Source of the DNA: Macrostomum lignano | Lineage: Eukaryota | Direction: 5' to 3' | Assembly (NCBI GenBank): GCA_002269645.1 | Contig: NIVC01004246.1 | Coordinates: forward strand, 1 to 53,395 | Length of the DNA: 53,395 nt | Part shown: positions 3,001 through 41,362 of the stretch, piece after piece | Layout: every line of letters begins with the position of its first letter | Numbering within the stretch: position 1 is the first letter of the stretch | Made by a program: the position numbers and the translations under genes | The notes under the pieces: generated by a model | What the model saw: only the letters and a program-made list of their open reading frames with translations | What the model was told of the DNA's origin: nothing | The model's database searches: none

Positions 3001-5870
3001 GACAATTGCATTTGGTTGCAGCAAGCTCCTTTAAGTTAGCCTATTCATTATTCAAATAGCTTTGTCAAATAAGCAAAATATAGTATGTAATATATAGAAC
3101 TTGACATAACTATAACTATAACTATCTAGGCCTAGTTTGTTTATCATACTAATAGGAGGTCAGGAGGATAGGTATTTGTACAAATAAAATAAGATGTCTT
3201 GATTTAAATATCTAGGCTGCCTTAAACTTCTATAAGCTTACCTAATATTAATAAGTTTATGCCTGCAATATGTCTATATAGGCCTATAATCCTACCTAAT
3301 CCTAGTCTTATTCTTAGCTTATTTAGATAATATATTAGGCCTATCTTACAATTAACATCTTGACTTAGTCTTAGATATTGTAAAAGATAATTGTAAAAAT
3401 TAACTTAAACTAATTATATTTTTAAAACTTTTTTAATCCTATTTTTTAACTATTATTAAAAATGAATCCAATACAACTATAAAACCCAAAAGCTTTGTAA
3501 CAATGCTTATAGAAATTAGCCTTAAACTTAAATGCATAATAAGAAGAAAATATCAAAAATAATTTAATTATTTTTGCTATTGCCATTTGTCTATAATTTT
3601 TGTCTTCTTATAATAAACATTTAAGCATACAAATGTTGTTTCCTAATTAGGACAACAATGCTAACAAACACCATTACCAACAATGCTGAAAAATTCAAAA
3701 TAGTAAGAAGTTTATTAAAATTTTAAGTATATTAAATAAACAGATTAGTTAAGAATAGAAAAAAATAGTTTGAAAATTTTAACATAAAGGCTTTGTATTT
3801 TATAATAAACTTTTATACTAGTGTCTAAAACATTTTTTGTATTTAATAAGGCCAAGGGCCTTATTCTTTTCTACGAAAAAAGATAATATAGTTTATTATA
3901 ATCCCATTGGCATTGAAAGCCAGTCCTATTTTTGTTTTTTGTTTTTTAGGTTTTACTTTTTCTTTTATTTCTAATTAATATTTGCTTTCTAATCCATATC
4001 ATTAGACTGCAAAGTTTTTCATTTGAAAAAAGTATATTTTTATTCAAATTTGCCTTTTGAATATTGGCAAGCCATGGGACCCTTATTGAAGTTCCTATTT
4101 AAGTATAAATCCTAGGACTTATAGGGTCTAATAATATATATAGACTAAATTAACTTGTGTATTCAGTATGCTTATATACAGTTTTATAAGTCTGATACTT
4201 GTAGAACAGATTGGAGTTATATTTTAAGTATTAAAAAATTGCCTGTTTTTAACTTAAAAAAATAGTTTATAAAGGCTGTTAGAAAATTTCTAGTTTGTTT
4301 AATAACTTTAAAAGCATATATATGTTTTTTATGAGTTAATATTTGACACATAGACTAGGCCTATGATAATTGCTTACTTAGGGTCTCAATTTTCTGCCTT
4401 AATATTGTTATTAAGCCAAAGTAGCAGGTTGTCAAAGTCAATACCATTGTGTATCTTCATTGTAAAATAAGTTAGCAATGAAATAAAATTTGATACATAA
4501 CCACTTAAGAGATAGGTATGTCCACATATTCAAAGTATTAGCCAAATGACCTACAGTTGAGTCATATGAGTCATATGAGTGAGATACAGTGAACTTGGCT
4601 TACTATAGTGACTCAAAACAAAGGTATGAAATGATGCTATGCCAGCTATGCCATTAGACTTACAACTAAAAGTTAAGGATTTGATTCCAAACCCATTGGG
4701 AACAATTTATGTCCTTGAACAACACTTAACTCTGCATTGCTTCAGTTCACCTAGCTGTAAATGGGTACTAGCATTAGCTGGGATAATTGAGGGTATGTGT
4801 GGGGACTCCTTTAGCCCTTGTACTAAACAGCCTAATAATAATTATTATTATATATTAAGGCAGAAAATTGAGACTGAATAAGTGCTCAGATATCATAGAT
4901 TGTGCATGCTAAATTAGCACATTAGCGCATGAACTTCTGAGTTATTAACCAATATGCAGAACTTTTTTAATAGCCCTTGTATGAGTTTCATGAGTATAAG
5001 CTTAGGAGTTATGAGCTAATGAGCTAAGCATTTCAAATTGTTTTTGCAGTTTTACCATTTCAATAGAGTAGATGTGCAGAGAGTTGTGGCTAAAATTTCA
5101 ACTCATTTAAATCTACTGTTATTCAGGAAATGCAGTCTAGAAACTTTTGCAATGTTTCATATTTTTACACAATGTCTCAGCAAAATTATATAATCCTACT
5201 GTTTATGCTTGCACCATGGCATACCAGGCTAGTACAAGGAAGTCGTGTAAGTTTGCTTTTTGTTGATTGTATGTATACATTGCCATATTGTATTATCTTC
5301 TAATCGAAATAAATAAAATATAACTACTTGAAGTAGTAATGACAGAGTGTTGAAATTGCTTGGGATTCTGATCCTGTGTTTTCTCTGCCAGTTTTAAGTT
5401 GTATTGCTGCAAATTTTGCTCTTTAAAAGCATGTTTAGATTGGTTTTCGTCAGATCTTTTGGCCTTGCATTTGACTTACTAATGTATGAAATGCATTGAA
5501 TTGAAGTTCATTGCTATGAATTGAAATGTAAATTACTGACCATGAAAACTGCTCTACACACATTTCAGCCATAGGTATTTGTCACATCTCAATGTTTCAA
5601 ATTGATTATCACGAATTAATAATTGAGTTACCAGATGCATGCTGCTCATGGTATAGCCCTCCTTATTCAAATGCCTTGATAACCTATTATTTCTAATGAG
5701 TTTTTGTTTTTTTAATATTAGTAAAGTCTTTTTAATAGCTAATATAAACCTATTTGCTGCACTAATCAATGTTTATCTACTGCAGTGTGCTGTGCTTCAT
5801 TTTTTAAAGTATTTAAAAATAATAGATTGACAGTTTTATATTTACCTTCTTAGCCAATCGCTCAGTTATG
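1..5870. other. AT-rich, CpG-depleted block with no convincing coding region
   Basis: Roughly 70% A+T by eye (not computed), CG dinucleotides rare, only short ORFs; contrasts with the GC- and CpG-rich remainder. Confidence 0.8.
1732..1979. mobile_element. Long inverted repeat, MITE/foldback-like
   Basis: Arms 1732-1820 and 1891-1979 are reverse complements at 85/89 nt, with a 70-nt spacer. No target-site duplication found, so the MITE call is tentative. Confidence 0.55.
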
Positions 5871-6196
5871 AATCAGTTGTAGACAGCAGCCGAAGCATGC
5901 ATTTACACCATAATAATCCCATTCCCTACTCTGATGCTAACTGTCTCCCAGATGGCAGGCTGGGGCTTCCCATCTACATGAAGGGCAAGTTTCAATACTG
6001 CACTGCTGATGTCTGCGTACTGTGACACTGTGCACTTTGCACACTGGTGTGAAGTGTGTTCGCAATTACCGCTGCAGTAACAGGGTGTAGTGCGTCAACG
6101 TGATAAAATGCGCTTTTAAATGCAACAGAAACCTATTTGAGTACTTCTATTGACAAATTTCTCACTTTTTGGATTATCGCTTTTTACTATAAACTG

Positions 6197-10812: not shown

Positions 10813-10904
10813 GTGGGTGTCGGGCGCTGTTTCTTGGCTGTAAATTTTGGTCAGCCCGCTTGCTTTCGGATGTTGGTCAGCTTTGTTTGTTGAAGTACCG
10901 GCTG

Positions 10905-12590
10905 AAGTGTGCCCTGACTGCTTCCTGCAGTGGGTCCTGGATTTTTCCTGCAGTGGGTCCTGACTGTTTCCTGAAGTGGGTACTGACTAAATCCCGAAGT
11001 GGGTACTGACTGTTTCCCGAAGTGGGTACTGACTGTTTCCTGAAGTGGGTACTGACTGTTTCCTGAAGTGGGTACTGACTGTTTCCCGAAGTGGGTACTG
11101 ACTGTTTCCTGAAGTGGGTACTGACTAAATCCCGAAGTGGGTACTGACTGTTTCCCGAAGTGGGTACTGACTGTTTCCTGAAGTGGGTACTGACTGTTTC
11201 CTGAAGTGGGTACTGACTGTTTCCCGAAGTGGGTACTGACTGTTTCCTGAAGTGGGTACTGACTGTTTCCCGAAGTGGGTACTGACTGATTCCTGAAGTG
11301 GGTACTGACTGTTTCCCGAAGTGGGTACTGACTGTTTCCCGAAGTGGGTACTGACTGATTCCTGAAGTGGGTACTGACTGTTTCCCGAAGTGGGTACTGA
11401 CTGTTTCCTGAAGTGGGTACTGACTGATTCCTAAAGTGGGTACTGACTGATTCCTGAAGTGGGTACTGACTGCTTCCTGAAGTGGGTACTGACTAAATCC
11501 CGAAGTGGGTACTGACTGATTCCTGAAGTGGGTACTGACTGCTTCCTGAAGTGGGTCCTGACTGTTTCCTGAAGTGGGTACTGACTAAATCCCGAAGTGG
11601 GTACTGACTGTTTCCCGAAGTGGGTACTGACTGTTTCCCGAAGTGGGTACTGACTGTTTCCTGAAGTGGGTACTGACTGTTTCCTGAAGTGGGTACTGAC
11701 TGATTCCTGAAGTGGGTACTGACTGTTTCCCAAAGTGGGTACTGACTGTTTCCTGAAGTGGGTACTGACTGTTTCCTGAAGTGGGTACTGACTGATTCCT
11801 AAAGTGGGTACTGACTGTTTCCCGAAGTGGGTACTGACTGTTTCCCGAAGTGGGTACTGACTGTTTCCTGAAGTGGGTACTGACTGTTTCCTAAAGTGGG
11901 TACTGACTGATTCCTGAAGTGGGTACTGACTGCTTCCTGAAGTGGGTACTGACTGTTTCCTGAAGTGGGTACTGACTGATTCCTGAAGTGGGTACTGACT
12001 GTTTCCCGAAGTGGGTACTGACTGCTTCCTGAAGTGGGTACTGGCTGATTCCCGAAGTGGGTACTGACTGTTTCCTGAAGTGGGTACTGACTGTTTCCTG
12101 AAGTGGGTACTGACTGATTCCTAAAGTGGGTACTGACTGATTCCTGAAGTGGGTACTGACTGCTTCCTGAAGTGGGTACTGACTGCTTCCTGAAGTGGGT
12201 ACTGACTGTTTCCTGAAGTGGGTACTGACTGCTTCCTGAAGTGGGTACTGACTAAATCCCGAAGTGGGTACTGACTGTTTCCTGAAGTGGGTACTGACTG
12301 CTTCCTGAAGTGGGTACTGACTGATTCCTGAAGTGGGTACTGACTGATTCCTGAAGTGGGTACTGACTGATTCCTGAAGTGGGTACTGACTGATTCCTGA
12401 AGTGGGTACTGACTGCTTCCTAATGTAGGTCTGACTGAATCCTAAAGTGGGTCCTGACTGCTTCCTAATGTAGGTCTGACTGAATCCTGAAGAGGGTCCT
12501 GACTGCTTCCTAATGTAGGTCTGACTGAATCCTAAAGTGGGTCCTGATTGCTTCCTAATGTAGGTCTGACTGCTTCCTGAGGTGGGTCCC
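10905..12590. repeat. 23-bp minisatellite in Pfk intron 5, about 70 copies
   Basis: Unit CCTGAAGTGGGTACTGACTGTTT with variants; both edges are diverged. Confidence 0.97.
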
Positions 12591-18007: not shown

Positions 18008-18130
18008 TGTGAGGATGCTGTGAGGGAGGATGCTGTGAGGGAGGATGCAGTGAGGATGCAGTGAGCATGCTGTGAGGATGAAGTGAGTGAGGATGCAGTG
18101 AGGATTAAGTGAGGATGCAGTGAGGATGAC
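18008..18130. repeat. Degenerate GTGAGGATGCA-type short repeat
   Basis: Several imperfect copies of about 11 bp. Confidence 0.75.
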
Positions 18131-18131
18131 T

Positions 18132-18735
18132 CTAGTGAGAATGGCTGCATTGGAGCTTGGCACCAGTACAACTCCAGTGAGAATGGCTGCATTGGAGCCT
18201 GGCACCAGTACAACTCCAGTCAGAACGGCTGCATTGGAGCCTGGCACCAGTACAACTCCAGTCAGAATGGCTGCATTGGAGCTTGGCACCAGTACAACTC
18301 CAGTCAGAATGGCTGCATTGGAGCTTGGCACCAGTACAACTCCAGTCAGAATGGCTGCATTGGAGCTTGGCACCAGTACAACTCCAGTCAGAATGGCTGC
18401 ATTGGAGCTTGGCACCAGTACAACTCCAGTCAGAATGGCTGCATTGGAGCTTGGCACCAGTACAACTCCAGTCAGAATGGCTGCATTGGAGCCTGGCACC
18501 AGTACAACTCCAGTCAGAATGGCTGCATTGGAGCCTGGCACCAGTACAACTCCAGTCAGAATGGCTGCATTGGAGCTTGGCACCAGTACAACTCCAGTCA
18601 GAATGGCTGCATTGGAGCTTGGCACCAGTACAACTCCAGTCAGAATGGCTGCATTGGAGCTTGGCACCAGTACAACTCCAGTCAGAATGGCTGCATTGGA
18701 GCTTGGCACCAGTACAACTCCAGTCAGAATGGCTG
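18132..18735. repeat. 42-bp minisatellite, left part (about 14 copies)
   Basis: Unit CAGTCAGAATGGCTGCATTGGAGCTTGGCACCAGTACAACTC; interrupted by the LTR element. Confidence 0.97.
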
Positions 18736-18953: not shown

Positions 18954-19796
18954 ATGGCGCACGCAAATGCACTTTTACCGCCAAAGTTTTCTGGCTCAGA
19001 CGATACCGATATCAACATGTGGCTGCAGATGTTTGAGGACTTTGCAGCAGATTCTGAGTGGAACGACACCAAGATGGCATCCAAGATCAAGCTGCTTCTT
19101 TCAGGTGAAGCCCTCGTGTTCGTCTGGGACCTGCCAGCGGCCAAACAGAGCAGCTAAAAGATCTTAAAGGACGAACTCGTCAAGTTCTACAGAGGCAAGG
19201 ATAACACTTTTCGCGCTATGTCTGAGTTCGAGAGCCGGAAGCGACGCCAAGGAGAGTCGCTGAGGGAGCTGTGCTACGCACTCAAGCTTCTGTACCGAAA
19301 GGCACGCCCGGAGCACGCTCAAACGGTGAGAGATTGCGAAGTGCGACACCGACTGCTAGCTCTGCTGCCGACAGAGATCCGTGAGGCTCTGTTGAAAGCT
19401 TCGGATTATGACAGCAGCAGTCCTGAACAGCTGGCAGACCGCGCCACAGCGCTGGAGAGCATCGGCAGCAAAGGAGCCCCGGCAAGCGTCGCAGTGACAT
19501 CGGTGAGCAGCCAAGTGACAGACCGGCTGGAGCAAATGCAAGAGCAGTTGGCGGATCTGGCTGCGACGGTCGCCACCATTGGCAGCCGCGGAGGACAGCG
19601 CGGTGGGAGAAGGAATGCAGCTCGTGGAAGAGGCAGCACCCGTGGAAAATGCTTCAACTGCGCTCAGCCCGGTCATTTCGCTGCTCAGTGTCCAGGCAAG
19701 CAAGTCGCTCCAGCTGTGCCGTCTGTGTGCAGCCGCTGCTCAGGCAGAGGACACCGGGCCGAGGTCTGCCCGACCCCGGCTTCGGGAAACTTCTGA
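18954..19796 (+). pseudogene. gag: gag with an in-frame TAA at 19155-19157
   Basis: PPKFSG N-terminus; the frame continues past the stop (KILKDELVKFY); two CCHC knuckles, CFNCAQPGHFAAQC and CSRCSGRGHRAEVC. Confidence 0.9.
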
Positions 19797-22700
19797 GGAC
19801 TGGTGAGCGCGGGCCATCACCAGCCCTGCCTAGCAAGGCCCAAACCGTCTCAATATTTCTGCCCGGCAGCATTGCTGGCCGGCCCTGCAGGTGGCTGTTC
19901 GACACTGGCGCACAGGTAACTTTAGTTTCAGCTGCGCTGCTTCGAGTTCTAGGAGTCGATGCTCAGCTTCATCCTCCTATCAGCACTCCGGTCGGAATCG
20001 ATGGTCGACGCTTGGAGTCTCCGGCGAGTGCAACGCTAGCGATACAGCTAGAGGGACTGCCATCCGTGGAGCACCAGGTAATGGTGGTTGCCGGGATTCA
20101 GCCGGAATGCGTGCTCGGTATGGACGCCATCGGGAAAATGTGCTCAAGTTTTAGCGTCAATCTCCCGGCGTCTTCTGTCCAGCTGGGGTCAACCAGGATC
20201 TCGATCTTGCCGGACAGGAGCTCCTCGCAGGCCTGCCGAGTGGTGCCCACCGCCGTGATTGCCAGAGTTGCCAGCACCGTGTCCATTCCAGCCCGCAGCC
20301 GCGTCATCATCTCAGTCAAAGTGCCATCGTCTGTCGAGCAGGGTCTATTCGAGCCCAGCTCAGATTTTATCGACAAGACTGGCCTGCTGCCAAACAGGGC
20401 TCTGGTGGTCTCCAGCGTAGACGGAAATCTCCCAGTGGGCGTCTGCAACGTGAGTGCCGACCCGGTGGTGCTCTACCAGAACCAGGCAATCGGCAACTTC
20501 GACGCTGCAGAAGTAAACGGAGCAGACGGTGAACCTGGTGAAGAGGAAGCTGGCTTTAACATCAACCCGGAGCTGAGCGAGTCGCAGCGCGAGCGCATCG
20601 AATCCTTGCTGTGCCAGGCAGAGCAGGCATTCGCCAGGCACGAGTTTGACCTGGGAACAACACACCTGCTGCAACACGAGATTAATCTGGAACCCGGCAG
20701 TCGCCCCATCAAGCATAGGCAACGGACCGTTCCCCTGAATTACCGGCAGCAAGTGGACGAGAAAATTAGCGAGATGCGGCGTCACGGGATTATCGAGCCG
20801 TCCTGCAGTCCATGGGCGAGTAATCTGCTTGTGGTGCGAAAGAAAAACAACGAGATTCGAATCTGCACCGACTGGAGAGCCCTCAACTCGTGCACCGTGA
20901 AGGACGCCTACCCGCTGCCTCCGCTGTCTGCTGCGCTGGACGCGCTCACTGGAAGCAGTTGGTTCAGCACTCTTGACCTCCGCCAAGGGTTCCTGCAGGT
21001 TGAGCTGCGAGAGCAAGACCGGGAGAAGACCGCTTTCTACACCACGCAGGGCCTGATGCAGTACAGGAAACTCGGGTTCGGCCTCTGCAACGCCCCGGCA
21101 ACCTTTCAGCGCCTGATGGACCTAACGATGGCCGGCCTGAACTGGACAGAGGTGCTCACGTACATGGACGATCTGATTCTGTTTAGTCAGACCTTCGAGA
21201 AGCATGCGGAAACACTGGAACAGGTCCTGGGAAGACTGCAGTCTGCCGGCCTCAAATTGAACAAACGCAAGAGCTACTTCTGCTTCCAGGAGGTTGAGTA
21301 CCTAGGACACAAAATCTCGGCAGAAGGCATTCGACCAACTCAGGACAAGGTCAGCGCTATCCAGTCCATCCCGATACCCGAATGCGCTGAGGATGTTCGC
21401 CGGCTTGTCGGCATGCTGGGCTTCTACCGGCGTTTCGTTCCGCACTTCGCCAGCATCGCTAATCCGCTTCATCAGGCGACTCAGAAGAGTCGACAGTTTC
21501 AATGAACAACTCAGTGCGATGACGCTCTGCGGAAGCTGAAGTCAGCTCTGTCGACACCACCCGTACTGAAGCTGCCTGACTTCTCCAAGGGATTCCGGTT
21601 GTGCTGTGACAGCAGCGGAGTGGCCATCGCCGGCGTCCTGAGCCAGCTCCACGAAGATGCCGAGTGTCCGGTAGCCTACGCGTCGAGAGTCCTGAACAAA
21701 GCGGAGCGCAATTATTCGACCACCCACAGAGAGCTTCTTGCGGTGGTCTGGGCGATGAAGCATTTCCGGAACTACTTGGCGTCCGCTGGCGAAATTCTCG
21801 TCTTCACCGACCACAAGCCGTTGCAAGGGCTGCTCAACACCAAGGAGCCAGAAGGCCGGCTAGCCAGATGGATTACATTTCTGCAGGAGATCAACTTCAA
21901 GCTGCTCTTCAGACCTGGTCGCGAAAACGTGGTTGCGGACGCACTGAGCCGAGCAGCGGCGACCCGGCTGCACCCTGCCTGGTCGGACAACGACATCCGT
22001 GTAGCGCAGGCTGACGACCCAGTGCTAGCGGCGGCTCGACAAGTGCTCCTCGGACAAAGGCCAAGACGTGGCAAGGCTGCAGATGACGCAGAACACCTGG
22101 TGAGGACAGAGAAGCTGGACCTTGGTGAAGATGGCGTCCTCAAGAAGAGTGGCCAACCCGTCATCCCGCGGCAGCTTCGCCAGGACCTGCTGCAGCTGCT
22201 GCACGACGATCCTGCAAGCGGGCACCTCGGAACCGAAAGGACGCTGGCCAGAGTCGTCAGCAGAGCTTGGTGGCCCGGCCTAAAGGACGACGTCCAGCAC
22301 TGGGTGAGCAGCTGCGAAGTGTGTCAGCGTCGCAAGGTACCGCATCAGCACCAGAGGGCACCGCTGCAGATCAACACCGTGCCATCAGCTCCTTGGGAGA
22401 TGGTGCAGGTGGACATCAAAGGGCCCCTCCCAGAGACTGAAGCCGGCCTCAGGTACATCATCTGCTTCACGGACGTGTTTTCCAAGTGGGTTGAGGCGAC
22501 CGCGGTGTCCAACATTGAGGCCCGGACGGTTGCGGATGCGCTGCTAAGGAGTGTCGTTCTTCGCCACGGAGCGCCCGAAGTCATCCACTCCGATCAGGGT
22601 CGTCAGTTTGAAAGTGACATCTTCCAAGAGCTGTGCCGCCTGCTGGATATTCGCAAGACAAGAACGACACCCTTCCATCCCAGCGGCAACCCTGCAGTCG

Positions 22701-23407
22701 AGCGGTTCAACCGAACATTAGGCGACATGCTGGCGGCGTACTGCATGGAACAGCAGAACAAATGGGCGGACTTCCTGCCGTACGTCATCTGGGCGTACAA
22801 CTCTTCAGCGCACTGCACCACCAAGAGGTCGCCCTACGCAGTGCTTCACGGATGTGACCCCAGGATCCCGGCAGAGCTCAGTTTACCTGCAGGCGGCGAA
22901 AGGAGGCTCGTCACGGACACGCTGGCAGACGCTCGCACCGGCTTGCAGCTCGTGCGGCAGCGCCTGCAGTCGACACAGCGGTCACGGAAGCAGCAGTACG
23001 ACAAGCGCCAGCACTTCACGCCGATCCAAGTCGGGCAGCTGGTGATGCTCAGCAACCCGGCGGTGTTGAAGGGCCAGTCCAAGGCTCTCCGTCGGCGGTG
23101 GCTGGGACCGTACCGCGTGCTCGAGAGGCTGGGCCCCGTCACCTACCGGATCTCAAAACCCGCCGGCCGGAGACGAAGCACGGTGGTGCATCACGACCGG
23201 CTCAAGCTGTTCGTGCGCAGGCGGCCGCAGCCCGCTTCCTGGCAGTCCGCCCCGACTCCGCCCGCTGCAGAGGCCGGCCGACCGCCCAGCCCGGCTGTCG
23301 ATCCGCGGCTGACCTGGACGGACTTGCTGGATGAGCCGACCGCAGTCGGCCCTCGGCGTTCTGCAAGGACTCGAAGACCGCCTGATTTTTATGCTGCGCA
23401 AAACTAG
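19784..23407 (+). pseudogene. pol: pol (protease, RT, RNase H, integrase) with an in-frame TGA at 21503-21505
   Basis: LFDTGA, YMDD, CDSS...ELLAVVWA, HHCC zinc finger, D-D-E (VDIKGP, HSDQG, VERFN) and GPY; both ORF-track pieces lie in one frame (FQ*TTQC). Confidence 0.93.
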
Positions 23408-23694: not shown

Positions 23695-23990
23695 GCTGCA
23701 TTGGAGCTTGGCACCAGTACAACTCCAGTCAGAATGGCTGCATTGGAGCTTGGCACCAGTACAACTCCAGTCAGAATGGCTGCATTGGAGCTTGGCACCA
23801 GTACAACTCCAGTCAGAATGGCTGCATTGGAGCTTGGCACCAGTACAACTCCAGTCAGAATGGCTGCATTGGAGCTTGGCACCAGTACAACTCCAGTCAG
23901 AATGGCTGCATTGGAGCTTGGCACCAGTACAACTCCAGTCAGAATGGCTGCATTGGAGCTTGGCACCAGTACAACTCCAGTCAGAACGGC
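23695..23990. repeat. 42-bp minisatellite, right part (about 7 copies)
   Basis: Same unit as 18132-18735, resuming in register after the TSD. Confidence 0.97.
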
Positions 23991-24911
23991 TACAATGAAA
24001 AGAAGCGACTTCTCCCAAGCTTTCTGAGTCAATTTTGCATCGGAAGTGCGAGCGAATATATTTGCCAAATACGAATATTTTAATACAGCGTGTGTGAATA
24101 CATTCAAATACCTGTCAGTGCATGACTGCGCGAATTCTGACAAAATAGCAATATTTAAATCATTCAGAGCTCATTAAGCAAATTTAAACCTTATGCAATT
24201 CCGCACGAGTCAGAGATCTGGTTGGCCGAGCACTGCTCACCTGCCAGCTGGTTAGCAGGTAGGAAGGAGTTGATAGCAGACTCTAGTTACAGTTACACGT
24301 GAGTGAGTTAATACTGTCTTGTGTTGCAGTGCTGCTGCTATGCAATGATTCGAGATATTCGGAGTAAGAGCAGGTGCACGGGACACTGCCGGTAATAGTA
24401 CACTGTGTACTTCAGTCAATTAAAACTTCTAAATCCTAATATCCCATAGAATGCAGTTGCTTAATCATGCATCATCAGCCATTGTTGGCACCCACACGAG
24501 TGTTGTGCCCCACCCAACACCGAGCACTGCTGTGGCCTAACGGTAGGATGCGCTGTGCCCCAACCCACACCGAGCACTGCTGTGGCCTAACGGTAGGATG
24601 CTGTGTCCTCTCAATCGCAAGCACTTGCTTTTGTGTGCCAATTGAGGCTAAAGTTCAGATTCGGTGAATACAAAAAGTCGCTTCAATCAGCACCAAACAA
24701 GAGGCATTCGTTGTGGTGGCTTTGATTCAAAGAGTTTTTATTCATTCGCTGGAGTGCCTTAATGCGGCCGAGCAGTGCAGAGCAGGTGCAGAGGAGTTGG
24801 GGTGTCGGGGCAGATTCGACTCGGTTTGTGCGGGTCGAATGCGACTCGGCTGCAAGGGGCGGCAACGGCAAGGGCGGCTGTGGCAGCGGCGGCTGGTTCT
24901 GAAGTGCAAAT

Positions 24912-26042
24912 ATGAAAACGCGTCTGTATCCGTGTGTGCTGTTCAGGCTCGTTAACCTATTAGTTTTGATTAGAAGACCTATCGAGGACCATTCTACCGA
25001 GGACCATTCTACCGAGAAACATTCTACCGAGGACCATTCTACCGAGGACCATTCTACCGAGGACCATTCTACCGAGGACCATTCTACCGAGGACCATTCT
25101 ACCGAGGACCATTCTACCGAGGGCCATTCTACCGAGGACCATTCTACCGAGAAACATTCTACCGAGGGCCATTCTACCGAGGACCATTCTACCGAGAAAC
25201 ATTCTACCGAGAAACATTCTACCGAGGACCATTCTACCGAGGGCCATTCTACGGAGGACCATTCTACCGAAAAACATTCTACCGAGAAACATTCTACCGA
25301 GGACCATTCTACCGAGGGCCATTCTACGGAGGACCATTCTACCGAGAAACATTCTACCGAGAAACATTCTACCGAGGACCATTCTACCGAGGGCCATTCT
25401 ACGGAGGACCATTCTACCGAAAAACATTCTACCGAGGACCATTCTACCGAGGACCATTCTACCGAGGACCATTCTACCGAAAAACATTCTACCGAGGACC
25501 ATTCTACCGAAAAACATTCTACCGAGGACCATTCTACCGAGGGCCATTCTACGGAGGACCATTCTACCGAAAAACATTCTACCGAGGACCATTCTACCGA
25601 GGACCATTCTACCGAAAAACATTCTACCGAGGGCCATTCTACCGAGGAACATTCTACCGAGGACCATTCTACCGAGGGCCATTCTACCGAGGAACATTCT
25701 ACCGAAAAACATTCTACCGAGGGCCATTCTACCGAGGGCCATTCTACCGAGAAACATTCTACCGAGGACCATTCTACCGAGGACCATTCTACCGAAAAAC
25801 ATTCTACCGAGGGCCATTCTACCGAGAAACATTCTACCGAGAAACATTCTACCGAGGAACATTCTACCGAGGACCATTCTACCGAGGGCCATTCTACCGA
25901 GGACCATTCTACCGAAAAACATTCTACCGAGGGCCATTCTACCGAGGAACATTCTACCGAGGACCATTCTACCGAGGGCCATTCTACCGAGGGCCATTCT
26001 ACAGAGGACCATTCTACCGAGGACCTTTATGATTGTCCATGA
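24912..26042 (+). CDS. Candidate (D/K/G/E)HSTE repeat protein; may be a non-coding 15-bp minisatellite
   Basis: ATG, hydrophobic N-terminus, about 69 uninterrupted GAG-NNN-CAT-TCT-ACC units, TGA. No expression evidence. Confidence 0.3.
   Translation: MKTRLYPCVLFRLVNLLVLIRRPIEDHSTEDHSTEKHSTEDHSTEDHSTEDHSTEDHSTEDHSTEDHSTEGHSTEDHSTEKHSTEGHSTEDHSTEKHSTEKHSTEDHSTEGHSTEDHSTEKHSTEKHSTEDHSTEGHSTEDHSTEKHSTEKHSTEDHSTEGHSTEDHSTEKHSTEDHSTEDHSTEDHSTEKHSTEDHSTEKHSTEDHSTEGHSTEDHSTEKHSTEDHSTEDHSTEKHSTEGHSTEEHSTEDHSTEGHSTEEHSTEKHSTEGHSTEGHSTEKHSTEDHSTEDHSTEKHSTEGHSTEKHSTEKHSTEEHSTEDHSTEGHSTEDHSTEKHSTEGHSTEEHSTEDHSTEGHSTEGHSTEDHSTEDLYDCP
24982..26027. repeat. 15-bp variant minisatellite
   Basis: Unit GAGGACCATTCTACC with GAAAAA, GAGAAA, GAGGGC and GAGGAA variants. 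Confidence 0.97.
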
Positions 26043-26523: not shown

Positions 26524-26822
26524 TCACGGAGCGGCTTCGCTGGCCGCCTCAGACAGGCCAGAGTCCAGCTGATGCAGCCCGGTGAGGCTGGACAGGTCTT
26601 CAACTATTGCCTCCATCCTGGCTGGCGGTGTTGAGTCCTTGTTCTTCAGGATACTGTGCTGCTGGGGCGGCTGCTGCTGGGGCGGCTGCTGGGCCGCGGG
26701 GGCTCGGGGAAACTCGGGGCTGGGGGTCGCCGAGGTTGGCGAGGTGGCCGCGGCGGATCTCGACAGGAGGCGCTTGGACTCTGGGGTTGGTAGCGGCGAG
26801 TTTGGGGAAGATGGGAGGAGAG
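26524..26822 (-). CDS. Shab: Kv2/Shab channel, probable terminal exon 4
   Basis: ctccccag acceptor in phase 1 matches the exon 3 donor; Ser/Pro/Gln-rich frame ending at TGA. Confidence 0.65.
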
Positions 26823-27212: not shown

Positions 27213-28039
27213 CTTAGTGCTTTAGTGTCTACCTGCCTGTATAAAAGAGCTTCTCAGATATCTAAAATAAAAATTTGATTCATTAAATAAATTGGCGGAA
27301 CAGTTTAAACAGAGTAGAGCAGTAAACTAACAGGTTGACGATAAGAAAACTCATGCTCAAGCTGCAGTATTTTAAATATTAAAGTGTGCGCTGCACTTGA
27401 CTGAGGTTGGCCCCAGCGCGAGCTTGCGAGAGGACTGAGGGCTGCTGCGCCCCCCCCCCCCCCGGTTCCGTCTGGTTCCGGGCGGGAGGCCCAGAGTCCT
27501 GCACTCTTTGCAACTGCAGCCACATTCGCTGGCAGTAAATTTGCCGGCCAGCTGAGCTGCCGCTCGCCCTCTGAGGGGAGAGAATTATCATTTTTCTCAG
27601 CCAGGCCGGCAATTGATGCAGCTGCAGCTCTGAAGAAGCCGCCTCTCAAAGTCAGGGAATCCGGCAGACCCTCCGGCAGCCCCGGGTCTCTCGGATAACA
27701 AGGGCGGGCATAATTAATCAGCTGCTCGAGACCAGCGCTAAAGCAACTGCTGGGCTGTTCGGGGGCGGCTGGGCTGGGGTCGAGTCCGAGCCCAGCGCCC
27801 CCAGCGCCTCATCTGGTGGCCAGACGGCTGCTGCCTCCTCGAGGGCGGCGCGATTTGTCAGCCCGGCTGCCACAGGCTGCTGCCCGGCGGGACAAGCCGG
27901 GCCGGTTGAAGGCAAGAAAAAAGAAACATGGAATGAGAGGGCCTGACACTGCGGTGGCGCTAATGGGCGGCCGAATCTGCTGCCTTGGCCGCGAGAGACG
28001 GGCAGCGGCCGGTCAAAAAACCGCCTGCGGCTGCCTGCG

Positions 28040-29235
28040 TTCAGATAGGCGAGAGTGAGATGGGGGTGGTGAGAGTGAGATGGGGGTGGTGAGAGTGAGA
28101 TGGAGGTGGTGATTGTAAGATGGAGGCAGTGAGAGTGAGATGGAGGTGGTGAGAGTGAGGTGGAGGCAGTGAGAGTGAGATGGGGGTGGTGAGAGTGAGA
28201 TGGAGGTGGTGAGAGTGAGATGGAGGTGGTGAGAGTGAGATGGAGGTGGTGAGAGTGAGATGGAGGTGGTGAGAATGAGATGGAGGTGGTGAGAGTGAGA
28301 TGGAGGTGGTGAGAGTGAGATGGAGGTGGTGAGAGTGAGGTGGAGGCAGTGAGAGTGAGATGGAGGCAGTGAGAGTGAGATGAAGGTGGTGAGAGTGAGA
28401 TGGAGGTGGTGAGAGTGAGATGGAGGTGGTGAGAGTGAGATGGAGGTGGTGAGAGTGAGATGGAGGTGGTGAGAGTGAGGTGGAGGCAGTGAGAGTGAGA
28501 TGGAGGCAGTGAGAGTGAGATGGAGGCAGTGAGAGTGAGATGGAGGTGGTGAGAGTGAGATAGAGGCGGTAAGACTGAGATGGAGGCGGTGAGAGTGAGA
28601 TGGAGGCGGTGAGACTGAGATGGAGGCAGTGAAAGTGAGATGGAGGCGGTGAAAGGGAGATGGATGTTGTGAGAGTGAGATGGAGGCGGTGAGACTGAGA
28701 TAGAGGCGATGAGAGTGAGGTGGAGGTGGTGATAGTAAGATGGAGGCAGTGAGAGTGAGATGGAGGTGGTGAGAGTGAGATGGAGGCAGTGAAAGATAGA
28801 TGGAGGCAGTGAGAGTGAGATGGAGGCAGTGAGAGTGAGATGGAGGCAGTGAGAGTGAGATGGAGGCGGTGAGAGTGAGATGGAGGCGGTGAAAATGAGA
28901 TGGAGGTGGTGAGAGTGAGAGTGAGATGGAGGCAGTGAGAGTAAGATGGAGGCGGTGAGACTGAGATGGAGGCGGTGAGACTGAGATGGAGACAGTGAGA
29001 GTGAGATGGAGGCAGTGAGAGTAAGATGGGGGTGGTGAGAGTGAGATGGAGACTGTGAGAGTGAGATGGAGGCAGTGAGAGTAAGATGGAGGCAGTGAGA
29101 GCAAGATGGAGGCGGTGAGTGAAATGGAGGCGGTGAGGGTGAAACGGAGGTGGAAAAAGTGAGATGGAGGCGGTGAGAGTGAGATGGAGGCGATGAGAGT
29201 GAGATGGGGTGGTGAAAGTGAAACGGGAGTGGTGG
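28040..29235. repeat. Purine-rich ~20-bp minisatellite
   Basis: Unit GAGAGTGAGATGGAGGTGGT / ...GGCAGT. Confidence 0.95.
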
Positions 29236-30368
29236 GGAGTGTTGTTGGTGCTAAAAATGACAATGGGTTCAGTCAAAGCCATGCAAAAGTAGTAAAACAT
29301 TCATTCCTACACAGAAAATACTGCGAATTCAAACTATACTAATTTAATGAACCGAAGTGAAATACTACTTAGCAACTAGCAGCCTCATTACCTGGGATTT
29401 GTCATCGAGGTATCGCAAGGTGAGATAAAAAATGTCTGAACTGCTACAAATGAAATGCAGGCCACAACAGTTCATTATTAAATCACTGGGAAGGAGTGCT
29501 CAGGGTGCTGCACAGCCTGAACTCGCTGACAAAGAAAAGCATTTCCACGGCATTCAGAAAAGTAAAAAATAACTCGAATAGTTGAGCATTTCTATGAAAC
29601 TGTTTACTGCTAGTGCAGGTAAGATTAGATAGAGAGGAAAGTTGCCTACTACTCGTGCACTGTGCTGACAGTGCCTGTAGCTGTCTATCACTGCCTACTA
29701 GACTGTGCTGACAGTGCCTGTAGCTGTCTATCACTGCTTCGATACCTCAAACGAAGGCTGTCGGGTTGCGTCTGCCCAGCAAAGATTTTCTCTCTGAGGT
29801 TGGCGGCGACATGAAATTGGGAGGGCGGTGGCGGGCAGGCTGCGGTAGACAGGACTTACCGAGAAGTATCTGGCGTTAGAATTTGAAAACATTGTTTCCA
29901 AAAATTATTTACGGTGCAGTTTCACAGAAATAAACTTGCAAAAATAAGCGTTTTCGCTGGATTTGCAACTCTCAAAAGCGCAGCAAGTGAGAAATGCGCA
30001 GATTGCGTGCTATAAAGCGGAACAGCTCGCGTTCCACATCTCGCCAATGCGCCGCTGGAAACGCGAACGCGGTGTGGCAAGTTTTGTTGTAAATTTTCCG
30101 CGAATTGGAGGCGTGGCGCGCTGCTAATTAAGCAGTCCGTGAGCAGCTCAAACTCAAACTCTGCTTTTAGAAGCAGACGCAGGCGGCAGGCAGACGGGCG
30201 AAGTTAGTCAGTTAAGATCGGGCTCAAAAGCACTCAAATGTGAACATGATAAAAATATGGGGGGCAGGAAAAAGTGCACAAACTCGCTCAGCTGCCCCAA
30301 TCAGCATGAGATGCCGAATCGAACCTGAGCTCGAGTTGCAGAACTGCCCACAGCTTCTCCTGTCTTAC

Positions 30369-31023
30369 CTGGCGAGTCCGCCGTCATCTGCAGCTCTTTC
30401 TTGGCGGAGTTCTTGAATCGCTCCCGCAGGGTCGGCTTCTTCTTCGGCTGGCCCGCCGGCGGCAGTGGCGGCTGCAGCGGCGACATCGGCGACGTCGACT
30501 GCGGCGGTGGCGTCTGCAGCTCCTCGTCCTCGGCGGCGAAGTGGATTTTCTCTCGCCGAGGCGGCAGCCGCTGCGGTGGCACCGGCGACTGCTGGCAGGC
30601 GGGACAGCTGGCGGGGCTCAGGGACAGGCTGGGGCTCTGGTTGTTGGACCGGCCCGGCGCCACCGCGGTCGAGCAGGTGGTGGCCGTGGCCGAGGAGTCG
30701 CTGCGGTCCCTGTGGCTGCTGCTGGCCGGCGGACCTGGCGGTGGCTGCGGCTGCGGCGGCTCCACCGGCGAGCTGGGCGCGTGGCTGTTGCAGGTGAGAA
30801 AGCTGTCCGAGCTGGCCAGACTGTGGCTGTGGCTGGCCAGGCCTGCTGTCCGGCCGGCTGCGGCCGCTGCGGCTGCGGCTGCTGCTGAGCTGAGGCTCCT
30901 GGTGAGGCTGGACTCGCGGCTGGGCAGCAGCTGCTGTTGCTGCTGCGATTGTGGCTGCTGATGCTGCTGAAAGCGCGAGGCGCCGCGGCAGTTTTCGTCC
31001 TCGGAGTCGATGTAGAGAATTTC
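30369..31023 (-). CDS. Shab: Kv2/Shab channel exon 3 (cytoplasmic tail with PRC-like motif)
   Basis: tttccag acceptor; the frame is open from EILYIDSEDEN to LQMTADSP; G|GTAAG donor. The ORF track shows only its 3' part (from 30765). Confidence 0.82.
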
Positions 31024-31156
31024 CTGGAAATGAGGGAGGCACTTGTTAATGGGGGGTTGTGGCAGGGCGGAGTATGTTTTCCCTGCCCTAGAAGACCTCG
31101 GCTCGAGTCCAGGCCGAGCAATTCGCTCCCAAAGCCATTCAGTCAGCGACCCTCAC

Positions 31157-32398
31157 CGCTGCACCGAGACTTGCCGCTGTCGCCTGCTGCTGGTTCGCTG
31201 GGCCCAGGCGGCCGCTCCGTAGCCAGGAGGTCCTGAGCTCGCGCCCCCCGTCGGCCAATTCAAGCGACCCGGTCGTCCCAATTTCGCCAGCGGGGTCTTC
31301 GGCGACCCCCCGGCCAGCCACCGGGTTCTGGAAGCAGACGAGCGGCTCCAGCTCGTGCTGGTGGTGCTGATGGTGCTGGTGGTGCTGGTGATGCTGGTGC
31401 TGTAGCAGGTGCTGCTGGTGCCGATCCGAGCAGCCGCCGGAGCTGCCGCCGCTGACCCTGTCCGGGCCGATGGCGGGCCCGGTTGCAGTGGAGGCGCCGC
31501 CGCCGGCGCTGCCGCTCTCGTGGCTGGCGCGGCGCCTGATGCCAGCCACTGAGGCGACGGAGATGAGGCTGCCCTTCCGCTTGGCGGCATCGATGGCCTC
31601 CATGCGGCGCTGGGCCTTCTCCCGGCGAGACTGCTCCTTGTAGTACTCGGCGAAGTTGTTCACGATGATGGGGATGGGCAGCGCCACCACCAGCACGCCG
31701 CAGATGCAGCAGACGCTGCCCACCAGCTTGCCCAGGAAGGTCTTCGGCACGATGTCGCCGTAGCCAACGGTTGTCATGGTGATGGCGGCCCACCAGAAGG
31801 TGGCGGGAATCGACTTAAACGGGTTGGGCCGGTCGCCCTCGCCCGGCTCGTCCTTCTCGGCGAAGTAGGCGAGGCTGGAGAAGAGCAGCACGCCGAGCAG
31901 GACGAACATGATGAGCAGGCCGAGCTCCTTGTAGCTGCGCCGCAGCGTGTAGCCCAGCGACTGCAGGCCGGTGGAGTGGCGCGCGAGCTTCAGCACCCGC
32001 AGGATGCGCAGTATGCGGAAGATCTGGACGATCTTGCGCACCGAGGTCAGCGAGTTGTAGGACTCGCCGCCGCTATCGTCCTGGAGGCTGCGCATGAGGA
32101 TGAGGGACAGGTAGTAGGGCACGATGGCGATCAGGTCGATCACGTTCATCGGGCCCTTCAGGAACTTGCAGGTGTCAGGCGAGGCCCAGAGGCGCAGCAC
32201 GTACTCCAGGGTGAACCACACGATGCAGACGGCCTCCACAATCTCCAGGCGGGGGTTGTCCTCCAGGCTCCACACAACCTGCGCGCTGCTGTTGGTGCCC
32301 ACCACCTTCGTCTGGTTCAGCTGCAGCTCCGGGATGGTGTTGAGCGTCAGGCCGACCGTGGACAGCACGATGAACAGGATGGAGATGATGGCCACAAC
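31157..32398 (-). CDS. Shab: Kv2/Shab channel exon 2 (S1-S6 and pore)
   Basis: S4 [23 protein letters not shown], pore [15 protein letters not shown]6 LPIPIIV; cag acceptor and GCG|GTGAG donor, both phase 0. Confidence 0.95.
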
Positions 32399-33885
32399 CT
32401 GCGGAGGCGGCAAGGGAGCCACATCACTGCAATCAAGCGGCCGGGTTCACTTGGAGGACACGGAGTGACTACATTCAGAAAATAACTGTCGTGCAGAAAG
32501 TACTTTAACCAGATGACAGCGCACTCAGAAATCAACCAGACAGACTTGAATTCGCCAACTCAACGCAGAGGAAGGCATGCGACAGTTTCGCTAAAGTAAA
32601 ATTAATCAAATATTTACATGGGAATGTACTGGGTGCTAATGCATAGGACACCAATAAATCAATAAAATGGATTGCTAATCTAGTCAACAATGATGCACAA
32701 TGACAGAAAAAAATGATTGGCTTTGATCTTGCCCGTTCACACTAAGAAGATTTGCATGTCATGCGGAGCGTCTTCACAAACTCTTTAGTAACTTTTTATG
32801 CCACAGGCAATCAGAATTTGAGCGCGGTTTATCCCGGCTTCTGGCCGTTTCGAGAACCCCCTGCATCAATCAAAAAACTGCTCCGCTTTCACCGCAGTCG
32901 GTTAGCAACTCTGCTGGTCTCCAGCTCGCTGATTTAAAACTCAGTTTCACCTCCCTGCCTCTCCTTCCTCTGCATCCCCTCTCCAGTTGCGGACCCTCGG
33001 CCTCAGGCCCTGCCGGAGACCGGAAAAAGTTTGGGCGGAGGGCGTTTCTAAGAAATTGCGTCCTCGGCCGCCGCTCGCAGCTCCTCATCTCGGCCACCCC
33101 CCCCCCCAGCAACTGCAGCCGCCGGGCCGCAAACCCGCCTGCCTTCCAAGCACTTTTACCAGCTCCGGCCGTCAAAGTCAGAGCTGGGAGGCTGAGCAGT
33201 TATTGAGATGGAGATTTTTCAATTGCCTGCCGCAGCCTCTCGTTAGGCCTGTCGATAAGCTGCATCGCGGCTGAGCTCTTGCAGCCTCCGAAAATCCCTC
33301 TGCCTAGCGGGCTGCCCCTTTTTTCCTCAAAGTGAGCAAAGATTTTCCTCAATAAAGGAGCTGCTCAAAAGCTCAGCCGGGGCTGATGAGGCGGATGCAT
33401 TGCATCGGGCCGCTCTGGAGTCTCCGATATCCGCGCGCGGTGCGCCTAATTTATAGCTGGGGCCCCCAGCAGCTCCCGGAAACCGATCGATATTTGCAGA
33501 GGCACCCCAGCTGCCCTGAGAGCCGCCGGCTTGCAAAATGCATTCCACACTGAACAGTTCAAGACAAAACGGATGCCGGATGAATAGAAAAAACAGCTAT
33601 GAAGCCACACCGACACGGAACTCAACAGAAAGTGAAAATAAATTGCACGGAAAACGAATCTTATCCGATTGACAGTTAAGCACAGGAATTATAAATGAGC
33701 TCCGTTTCTGCTGACTCCTTCTGAGTAATAAATAAATCAGATAGGCGTGACAGAAAATCATTTGCATGGTGACTGGGCCTCGGGTGGGTTTCCATGGTTA
33801 CCTGGTGCGTTTTCACGATTCTTTTCGTTGTGGCGTCATCCTTATGTGAGGATAAATCAAGTAGGCGAATATAGAACAGGCCAGT

Positions 33886-34009: not shown

Positions 34010-34503
34010 CTGGGTGTCAGGGTGCCCTGTCTGGTGTCAGGGTGTCCTGTCTGGTGTCAGGGTGTCCTGTCTGGTGTCAGGGTGTCCTGTCTGGTGTCAG
34101 GGTGTCCTGTCTGGTGTCAGGGTGTCCTGTCTGGTGTCATTGAGTCCTGTCTGGTGTCAGGGTGTCCTGTCTGGTGTCATTGAGTCCTGTCTGGTGTCAG
34201 GGTGTCCTGTCTGGTGTCAGGGTGTCCTGTCTGGTGTCAGGGTGTCCTGTCTGGTGTCAGGGTGTCCTGTCTGGTGTCATTGAGTCCTGTCTGGTGTCAG
34301 GGTGTCCTGTCTGGTGTCATTGAGTCCTGTCTGGTGTCAGGGTGTCCTGTCTGGTGTCAGGGTGTCCTGTCTGGTGTCATTGAGTCCTGTCTGGTGTCAG
34401 GGTGTCCTGTCTGGTGTCAGGGTGTCCTGTCTGGTGTCATTGAGTCCTGTCTGGTGTCAGGGTGTCCTGTCTGGTGTCATTGAGTCCTGTCTGGTGTCAG
34501 GGT
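34010..34503. repeat. 20-bp minisatellite with two variants
   Basis: GGGTGTCCTGTCTGGTGTCA and TTGAGTCCTGTCTGGTGTCA. Confidence 0.95.
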
Positions 34504-34949
34504 CACAGCCAAATGCATTCAAGTCATACCAATATAATTTCACAGCCACTTCTCAAAACCCTTGGGGTAGCAGGTTGGAGCTGGTGGAGTCCCGGCCCGG
34601 TTGGCTCTCAGAAAGATTTGCTGCAATAAAATTCCTACACGGTGACACGAAAGCCACTAAAGGGGAGGCAGCGGGCGCGCTCAAATCCCAAGTGCTGACG
34701 ATGCAGCTAATTAATAATTAATGAGGCAAACGAAGCAGTTGACGACGACAAATCTGGCTGATAACCCGGCCACCAGAAATCCCTGCGAATTCCGACATTT
34801 TCCTGTCGACTCACGGAGTGACCTGCCTGGTGATAAGCCAGTGCCTGCACGGGCAATGGGCCTGGGGGAGGGGGCTGCCCCTGGATGTGGCTGCGACTGG
34901 GAATGGAAAAGACAGATGGGAAAGCAGGGTTGAGACTTGGCTGGGCAGA

Positions 34950-35755
34950 GCTGGGAGAGATAAGACACTGTGAGAGAATAGAGCTTGGAGAGATGAGATA
35001 CTGGGAGAGAAAAGAGCTGGGAGAGTTGAGACACTGGGAGAGATGAGACACTGGGGGAGATGAGACACTGGGAGAGATGAGACACTGGGAGAGATGAGAC
35101 ACTGGGAGAGATGAGACACTGGGAGAGATGAGACACTGGGAGATATAAGACACTGGGGGAGATGAGACACTGGGAGAGATGAGACACTGGGAGAGATGAG
35201 ACACTGGGAGAGATGAGACACTGGGAGAGATGAGACACTGGGAGATATAAGACACTGGGAGAGATGAGACACTGGGAGAGATAAGACACTGGGGGAGAAG
35301 ACACACTGGGAGAGATGAGACACTGGGAGAGATAAGACACTGGGGGAGATAAGACACTGGGAGAGATAAGACACTGGGAGAGATAAGACACTGGGAGAGA
35401 TGAGACACTGGGAGAGATGAGACACTGGGAGAGATGAGACACTGGGAGAGATGAGACACTGGGAGAGATGAGACACTGGGAGAGATGAGACACTGGGAGA
35501 GATGAGGCACTGGGAGAGATGAGGCACTGGGAGAGATGAGGCACTGGGAGAGATGAGGCACTGGGAGAGATGAGACACTGGGAGAGATGAGGCACTGGGA
35601 GAGATGAGGCACTGGGAGAGATGAGACACTGGGAGAGATGAGACACTGGGAGAGATGAGACACTGGGAGAGATAAGACACTGGGAGAGATAAGACACTGG
35701 GAGAGATAAGACACTGGGAGAGATAAGACACTGGGAGAGATAAGACACTGGGGGA
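34950..35755. repeat. 17-bp minisatellite
   Basis: Unit GACACTGGGAGAGATGA. Confidence 0.96.
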
Positions 35756-36404
35756 GAATAGATGCCCGATTTAGATGCATGCAGACTCGGCAACATGTGG
35801 TGCTCGCCGGCCCCTTGGCAGACACATTAAAGCCGGAGTGCATTTGAATATCGCAGGCGCCGGGTTCGCCTTGTTTGCAAGAGCGCCGCCCCGGCGGCTG
35901 ATAGGGGGGGGGGTCGGTGACAAGGCTTTTATCCGCATGAGCTCAAACAGCTCAAACAGCTCAAACAGCGGGCTCCGGAGGCTGACAGAGAGAGACAGGG
36001 AGGCGAGCTCCTACTATCGATTGACTGCGCGCTGGGCTTTCCTAGAAACGGCGGGCCGGCGGGTCCCTGGGGAGGCTGCCGAGGCTCGGGGCGGCCGGGA
36101 GGCTCCTGGGGCGGGTGGTGGAAATCTCTTCAAAAGTCTACTGCAAGCGCCGTGTTATCATCCGGCGACCTCTCCTGTGTTTTTCTGCTTTTTGCCTCTG
36201 CCCGACCCCGCCAGCCGCAGGCCCTGATCACTGCAGGCCCAGCTTCGGTCATTGCCCGGGACCGCCCCGCCCTCTGCGCCAGAAATTTCAGAATAATCGA
36301 ATTGACGGGCCGGCCTCGGGGCTGTTGATTCCCGCCCGCCTGGGGCTGCCATCGATGCCAATTGGAGGGGCCGGCTGTTTCTCGGCAGGAATTTTGCCAC
36401 CGAT

Positions 36405-40640: not shown

Positions 40641-40759
40641 ACGTGTCTTCCTCTGGGATTCGAGCCCGGGACCAGAGCATGCAAAGGGCAAGGCAGGGCA
40701 ATTGAGACTCAGCAAAGATGGAGTCAGGGCAAAGCCCTGGTGCAGCAGCCGGCGCTCAC

Positions 40760-41362
40760 CCTGGCCAGCGTGGAGGTCTGCGGCTCCTCCAGGATGTTCC
40801 ACACGATCCGCTTGAACTCGCCGTAACGCCCGAAGCCGAAGTCGTGCTCAACGTTGCGCTGGTTCCACTTCACGGCCTCCATGTCCTTGCGAATCTCCTC
40901 CTCCGCCGTCTCCTTCTTCTGGTGGTACTTGTGCTGGCAGCAGAGGTCGAAGTAGTCCTCGGAGATGCCCCAGTACTTGAGCTCGGCAGCGAAGGAGATC
41001 ACGCAGACGTCGTCGCTCATGTGCAGCTTGCCGGTGCGGTAGAAGTTCAGCACGGGGTGGAAGAACTTCGGGTGCCGATCGAAGTAGAACTCGCCCTCGC
41101 ACGCGCTGTAGTCGTCGCAGAGCTCGCGGATTTCCTCCGGACTGCCGGCGAGTCGCAGGCGGCCCAGGCGGGTCTTGGGCAGGCGGTCCAGCGTGCGCCA
41201 CATGACCTCGTGCCGCTCCCCGCCGACATTCAGCACCACCCGGCGGGGTCGGTCTGCCTCGCCTGAGTGCGGCTGATGGTGATGATGATGATGATGATGA
41301 TGATGAGGCTGCTGAAGAGGGCTGGTGCGGATCCTCAGTGGCTCCCGGGGCTTGGTGATCAT
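40760..41362 (-). CDS. Shab: Kv2/Shab channel exon 1 (T1 tetramerisation domain)
   Basis: RRVVLNVGGERHEVMWRTLDRLPKTRLGRL...FYFDRHP...FYRTGKLH...CCQHKY is Kv2-specific; AGG|GTGAG donor, phase 0. The start codon is uncertain. Confidence 0.92.

Follow-up and report, generated by a model that had tools for sequence, protein, structure and literature searches.

Mammalian Kv2 channels have a second, non-conducting role, in which they build ER-plasma membrane junctions through VAP. According to the part of PMC7458461 that cites Lim et al. 2000, the clustering residues of Kv2.1 are S583, S586, F587 and S589, and an S586A substitution abolishes both clustering and ER-PM remodelling (PMC6233057). Tract, core and flank of the motif read SMSSID-SFISCAT-DF in human Kv2.1 and STSSID-SFTSCAT-DF in human Kv2.2 (PMC9213790, PMC6380216), and peptides of both channels bind VAP-A/B only when position 4 of the core is phosphorylated (PMC7705450). 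A threonine can serve as position 4, as PTPIP51 shows, and the residue at position 5 fits into a hydrophobic pocket (PMC7705450, PMC9213790). On the published Phospho-FFAT matrix (Di Mattia et al. 2020, Table EV4), where members fall below a threshold score, Kv2.1 and Kv2.2 score 0-2.5.

A 2025 bioRxiv preprint (10.1101/2025.09.21.677649) describes this ncFFAT/PRC domain as widely conserved in Kv2 across Bilateria. The domain was once thought to be vertebrate-specific because the first Drosophila Shab isoform lacks the motif, and long Shab splice variants have since been found to carry it. The same authors count at least eight or nine losses and regard the bilaterian ancestor as the most likely origin of the non-conducting role; their text contains no description of the motif in a flatworm Kv2. 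Since that preprint reached the same conclusion for Bilateria, the idea of an early origin is no longer novel. The new points offered here are small, namely a flatworm instance, a pair of paralogs and an apparent absence in parasitic flatworms, and they add coverage, not a new idea.

The window is the whole of contig NIVC01004246.1 (assembly GCA_002269645.1) from Macrostomum lignano, 53,395 nucleotides long. Judged by its predicted product, a gene of at least four coding exons on the minus strand of this window is a Kv2 (Shab, KCNB) alpha subunit. In tblastn, a Kv2.1 probe matches a T1 block at 41245..40751 (-), 50% identical, and an S1-S6 core block at 32401..31556 (-), 61% identical (60.6%). 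The model protein yields Pfam matches to BTB_2 (5.8e-28), Ion_trans (2.3e-54) and Ion_trans_2 (6.9e-13), and it has the TVGYGD pore and the six-transmembrane core with S4 arginine ladder that are characteristic of Kv2 channels. Among the 120 best matches listed, nearly all of the named proteins are Shab/KCNB and not Kv1, Kv3 or Kv4, with 55-76% identity over the core.

Coding exon 1 (40760..41362, minus strand), which was placed by tblastn with the Kv2.1 probe, frame reading and Pfam, encodes the N-terminus and T1 (BTB_2) and ends at the donor AGG/GTGAGC (slashes mark splice sites); its 5' end is provisional, the frame being open upstream to 41524. Coding exon 2 (31157..32398, minus strand; tblastn, Pfam, GC3) carries S1-S6, the pore and the proximal cytoplasmic tail, with CCGCAG/GTT as acceptor and GCG/GTGAGG as donor, the last exon base being 31157. 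Intron 2 (31024..31156, minus strand) is a GT..AG intron of 133 nt that has a pyrimidine-rich 3' end and a branch-point-like site, CATTAAC. Coding exon 3 (30369..31023, minus strand; frame of the database fragment P0121, GC3, paralog exon) encodes a presumably disordered, low-complexity tail with the motif. Its acceptor is ...CTCATTTCCAG/GAA, also given as CATTTCCAG/GAA, its first base is 31023, and it ends at a phase-1 donor, CCAG/GTAAGA. Coding exon 4 (26524..26780, minus strand; tblastn of P0121, frame reading) supplies the C-terminal end, with TGA as stop codon (26526..26524). Use of another AG, 2 nt further down, would start the exon at 26778 and in a different frame; the gene model is 918 aa long, or 892 aa with this second AG as the exon 4 acceptor.

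A protein search with the tail only returned a sole match, P0121 (UniProt A0A1I8IH34), a Macrostomum lignano fragment that corresponds to window positions 30606..30295 and 26779..26527. It is 99% identical to distal exon 3 in the same frame, runs on into exon 4, and starts downstream of the motif. A match this close places the window in M. lignano or in a nearly identical genome. That search returned no closer orthologue and no transcript-derived protein covering the exon 2/3 junction. P0121 is a 158-aa model named 'WH2 domain-containing protein' that is really the C-terminal tail of a Kv2 channel, and the channel gene is therefore split or unannotated in that annotation. Exon 4 reads through in one frame from the acceptor CAG/26780 to the stop at 26526..26524. 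P0121 enters exon 4 2 nt later, at the tandem AG, and arrives at this C-terminus only if one base near 26710 is dropped; comparison of exon 4 with P0121 also turns up an extra QQPPQ repeat. Allelic or homeolog variation, an error in the assembly, or alternative NAGNAG splicing could each account for the mismatch.

The surroundings of the gene are rich in repeats. Two long plus-strand ORFs at 19649..23407, one encoding an aspartyl protease and reverse transcriptase and the other RNase H and integrase, form a Ty3/gypsy-type retroelement, which is bordered on both sides (18129..18735 and 23695..23991) by arrays of one 42-bp minisatellite. Introns and flanks hold about thirty minisatellite arrays with units of 15-48 bp and up to 73 copies (for example 28051..29221, 34013..35757, 10902..12587 and 24979..26025), and these yield long spurious ORFs on both strands, such as those of SLSPPPSHSH type at 28013..29300. 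The first part of the window (1..6000) has a GC content of 27-32% versus 50-65% elsewhere, with a sharp boundary near 6 kb.

The motif becomes part of the channel only if exons 2 and 3 are joined. In unspliced sequence a stop at 31141..31139 ends the core frame, and the motif frame is shut off on its upstream side at 31155..31153, so that both frames are broken and removal of intron 2 is needed. Three of the GT sites after S6 are consensus-like, all in phase 0, and the one at 31157 is the best; among the AG sites surveyed, 31023 has the most pyrimidine-rich upstream stretch (0.75). Because donor and acceptor are both in phase 0, the join is in frame, and the predicted protein reads ...ATAASLGAA/EILYIDSEDENC... 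across it. The predicted spliced nucleotides are ...GCAGCG joined to GAAATTCTC..., or in a wider reading ...GGTGCAGCG/GAAATTCTCTAC.... GC3 is 0.94-0.96 in the conserved exons (0.96 in the exon 2 core) and 0.83 in the exon 2 tail. In exon 3 the motif frame has a GC3 of 0.86, the highest of its three codon positions, and the GC content of intron 2 is 0.58 versus about 0.70 in the exons on either side. The distribution of GC by codon position thus supports the motif frame of exon 3. The initial annotation had claimed that splicing the exon 2 donor at 31157 to the acceptor at 31023 opens the motif frame, and the canonical, in-phase GT..AG sites agree with it. From these features we infer that the 31157/31023 junction is used.

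It might instead be that the motif lies outside the main channel protein, because the junction sees little or no use or because retention of the intron yields a short isoform, so that most channels are made without the motif. Retention of intron 2 would end the protein at 31139, and the motif exon is alternative in insects, where several isoforms of one gene lack the motif (the preprint 10.1101/2025.09.21.677649 says likewise for Drosophila). However, no better donor or acceptor is available than these two in-phase sites, the coding signature runs on into exon 3, and the annotated fragment P0121 is in the same frame. In addition, the annotated model of the M. lignano paralog is spliced at the equivalent place, and the motif would hardly be conserved unless it were translated. 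We therefore consider it quite unlikely that most channels lack the motif, and prefer the reading in which exon 3 belongs to the main product.

Within exon 3, the minus strand at 30822..30784 codes for SLASSDSFLTCNS, as obtained by translating the reverse complement of 30784..30822 (codons AGT CTG GCC AGC TCG GAC AGC TTT CTC ACC TGC AAC AGC). This PRC-like motif comprises model residues 683-695 and rests on matrix scores and alignment A1. Its seven-residue FFAT core is SFLTCNS (30784..30804, minus strand), which we compared with the SFISCAT and SFTSCAT of the mammalian channels (PMC6380216) under published position rules (PMC9213790, PMC7705450). Matrix scores and alignment A1 likewise define the serine/acidic tract upstream, HSHSLASSD (30805..30831, minus strand), a type of tract whose phosphorylation has been described (PMC9213790). 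The full stretch is HSHSLASSD-SFLTCNS-HAPSSP.

An aromatic residue, F690 (codon TTT, 30801..30799), stands at core position 2 and is the equivalent of Kv2.1 F587. Position 4 holds T692, a Ser/Thr residue equivalent to S589 and the predicted phospho-switch, and position 5 holds the small residue C693, in a column that was part of the selecting pattern. In the upstream tract, S686 and S689 are the equivalents of S583 and S586, accompanied by further serines, and D688 is the equivalent of D585. The motif lies about 225 residues past S6 in a low-complexity cytoplasmic tail whose composition suggests disorder. At the level of sequence, then, every requirement of a phospho-FFAT is present in the window motif. 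The initial annotation had placed such a motif at 30784-30822 in the Kv2 tail, with S, S, F and T as the equivalents of S583, S586, F587 and S589 and with the D and C also present; translation of the minus strand and residue-for-residue alignment with the mammalian PRC bear out each of these statements.

It had also remarked that the ORF track misses this part of the frame, which is correct. The motif reading frame is open from 31152 down to 30301, and the program-made ORF list omits the motif because the first listed start in the frame (ATG, GTG or TTG), a GTG at 30765, falls 3' of it. More generally, the motif is missed because it lies in a small downstream exon without its own start codon and because the database models are fragments that start after it. 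All six frames are open in the GC-rich stretch over the motif. We rejected the plus-strand ORFs there as GC-rich, low-complexity by-products, the codon-position GC signature favoring the minus-strand frame.

A tail that is rich in S, A, P and Q, in a GC-rich stretch with all frames open, might be expected to produce such a motif by chance. We scanned the tails of the 120 listed Shab matches with the pattern [DEST][ST][FY]x[ST]C and built a protostome matrix of 22 columns from 32 distinct instances, with Macrostomum left out and with the serine-rich composition of the window tail as background. The best site of this matrix in the 401-aa tail is HSHSLASSDSFLTCNSHAPSSP, at 18.4 bits, a score equaled in 0 of 20,000 shuffles. 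Because the instances were chosen by regular expression, the six core columns are partly circular in this test. The instances were selected without regard to the 16 flanking columns, so a test confined to these columns escapes that circularity; they contribute 9.0 bits, a value equaled by 1 of 20,000 random 22-mers. When the tail is shuffled with its composition preserved, the core pattern by itself turns up in 31 of 20,000 trials.

A second, vertebrate-type matrix was made from the seven motifs of this kind that 150 cluster representatives yielded; Pfam Kv2channel is present in five of the seven proteins of origin. This matrix selects the same 22-mer in the window tail, with a score attained in 6 of 20,000 shuffles. 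In A1, a MAFFT alignment of 16 segments drawn from all of these groups, S686, D688 and C693 are invariant. Chance resemblance is thus rejected at about p < 0.001 by the shuffle tests, the paralog moreover retains the core, and we regard an origin of the motif from serine-rich, low-complexity sequence alone as extremely improbable.

Shab tails of other protostomes carry the same element, as seen in the pattern scan of the listed matches. It takes the form S[VI]DSSDT[YF]ASC.THPF..S[QE] in insects and SSSDTY[AST]SC.THP..SP in gastropods and bivalves, and reads SSDTYASCYTHP in a nemertean and STDTYASCFTHP in an octopus; the protostome consensus is S.DSSDT[YF]ASC.THP..S. Occurrence in insects, molluscs, a nemertean and a cephalopod argues that the motif is ancestral and not convergent, and the window motif is very probably homologous to the PRC/ncFFAT motif. 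As far as the motif itself is concerned, this distribution supports the earlier suggestion that the ER-tethering role of Kv2 may predate vertebrates, and the comparison of protostome Kv2 tails that had been proposed as a check reveals a motif shared across phyla.

The initial annotation had termed the motif 'vertebrate-type', a description that suits the short motif but not the remaining tail. The Pfam family PF03521 Kv2channel, a 288-position profile with a threshold above 25 bits, has no match in the window protein even at E <= 10. It is also unmatched at E <= 10 in the M. lignano paralog, in Haliotis and in Apis, and a vertebrate control (P0162) scores 438 bits. We accordingly rejected filing the tail under Kv2channel, which matched none of the protostome tails tested.

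The best full-length relative of the window gene is a second M. lignano Kv2, P0001 (locus L001), which is 71% identical over the aligned half of the query and 84% identical over 275 gap-free core columns; a rough neighbour-joining tree places the two genes as sisters. In the annotated model of P0001, a phase-0 intron lies within a few codons of the corresponding position (...AETK/HHVGLCVDDSDD), and its phase-1 donor, ...EST G/GTAAGG, mirrors ...DSP G/GTAAGA of the window gene. P0001 also has an extra intron in the proximal tail, which the window gene lacks.

The two tails cannot be aligned (BLASTP E = 0.30). The P0001 tail nonetheless carries SGDTFGTCSSNPQSP (core DTFGTCSS), which is its best match to the window motif (p = 0.015), the core pattern appearing in 47 of 20,000 shuffles of that tail. 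The copy is weaker, with Gly at position 3 and poor flanks, and both paralogs keep D[ST]Fx TC xS. Of three collinear islands considered between the tails, the one with the motif alone reaches significance when tested by itself (p = 0.015). The one with REKIHF is borderline (p = 0.066), and the one at the exon start was not significant in the register first tried. That the core is kept in both paralogs amid decayed surroundings argues for selection on the core.

Annotated Kv2 proteins of Schistosoma (two groups), Paragonimus, Taenia, Rodentolepis and Protopolystoma contain no such motif, nor was it found in the annotated Kv2 of one rotifer and one nematode. For the parasitic flatworms this absence stands at the level of annotation, with loss unproven, because several of the tails are short and the models may omit a distal exon. 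The Kv2 proteins of parasitic flatworms fall into two groups.

Macrostomum lignano is a free-living, early-branching and genetically tractable flatworm in which transgenesis and RNAi are possible, so that a tether hypothesis is testable in vivo. We think it rather probable that the tail motif is the flatworm copy of an ancestral bilaterian Kv2 PRC/ncFFAT motif and that it tethers the channel via VAP. By analogy with mammalian Kv2.1 and Kv2.2, kinases would phosphorylate T692, at FFAT position 4, together with the upstream serines, and the phosphorylated motif would then dock on the MSP domain of the ER protein VAP. F690 would fit the aromatic pocket of MSP and C693 a small hydrophobic pocket. 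Docking on VAP would pin the channels at ER-plasma membrane junctions, producing clustering independent of ion conduction. Phosphorylation, VAP binding and channel clustering are what we infer for the window motif from this parallel. The flatworm example and the paralog pair also support the date proposed for the VAP-binding motif, the bilaterian ancestor.

It is also possible, though we find it doubtful, that this conserved tail element serves another purpose in protostomes or flatworms (as a kinase or phosphatase docking site, a phosphorylation cluster, a degron, or a site for another partner) and that its use by VAP is a later, vertebrate development. The protostome consensus has T-H-P..S[QP] downstream of the core where vertebrates have T-D-F, which hints at partly different constraints. 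The literature searched contains neither an experiment on Kv2-VAP binding in invertebrates nor anything about Macrostomum, and the preprint (10.1101/2025.09.21.677649) only proposes a function. Against this, the residue classes of a phospho-FFAT are all kept across phyla (aromatic, S/T and small at positions 2, 4 and 5, together with the upstream Ser/acidic tract), and PMC9213790 describes VAP and FFAT recognition as present throughout eukaryotes. The VAP tether is accordingly the reading that we retain.

A further FFAT-like sequence lies near the start of exon 3, which opens with EILYIDSEDEN. LYIDSED (30997..31017, minus strand) resembles the ACBD5 core VYCDSME (PMC9213790), its positions 2, 4, 5 and 7 being occupied by Tyr, Asp, Ser and an acidic residue, respectively. 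Speculatively, the tail may bind VAP at this second site of conventional type as well, 66 residues ahead of the phospho-FFAT. LYIDSED is not kept in the paralog, which has GLCVDDSDD there, and conventional FFAT sequences occur in 13 of 173 Shab tails at no common position; given this scatter, LYIDSED is not a conserved feature. Hymenopteran Shab proteins (P0052 Prorops, P0065 Aphidius, P0077 Microplitis, P0098 Orussus and P0100 Nasonia) share an island, K[DE][FY]RDAEDIMPL, upstream of the PRC-like motif, with a core, E[FY]RDAED, that is close to the canonical FFAT EFFDAxE. Insect Shab may therefore have two VAP-binding motifs. A more elaborate proposal for the flatworm is that a working Kv2-VAP tether was kept in two anciently diverged M. 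lignano paralogs and lost in Neodermata, that the window tail is in two parts, LYIDSED and the phospho-FFAT 66 residues on, and that retention of intron 2 makes a motif-less isoform. We put this forward tentatively and judge it unlikely as a whole.

Among known systems, the Phospho-FFAT proteins STARD3, MIGA2 (SLTSED-SFFSATE) and PTPIP51 (VYFTASS) follow the same logic, being membrane-anchored with the motif in a disordered tail, and their S/T at position 4 needs phosphorylation for MSP binding (PMC7705450, PMC9213790). These proteins are otherwise unrelated to the window gene, the resemblance being one of linear motif only, and they act at endosome and mitochondria contacts and not at the plasma membrane.

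Mammalian Kv2.1 and Kv2.2 are much closer. With them the window motif, SLASSD-SFLTCNS-HA in tract, core and flank, shares its location in the cytoplasmic tail after S6, the spacing S-x-x-S-x-D-S-F-x-[ST]-C, a phosphorylatable position 4, a small residue at position 5 and a serine-rich upstream tract. It differs in having Thr and not Ser at position 4, and N-S-H-A where vertebrates have A-T-D-F, with its acidic and aromatic residues, at positions 6-7 and in the flank. The tail around the motif has no detectable similarity to that of mammalian Kv2. Compared with protostome Shab, the window motif shares SSD-[ST][FY]x[ST]C-x[ST]H and, with molluscs, a distal S-P. It reads D-S-F as in vertebrates, whereas most protostomes have D-T-Y or D-T-F. 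The window motif and the motif of the long Shab isoforms of protostomes are clearly the same element.
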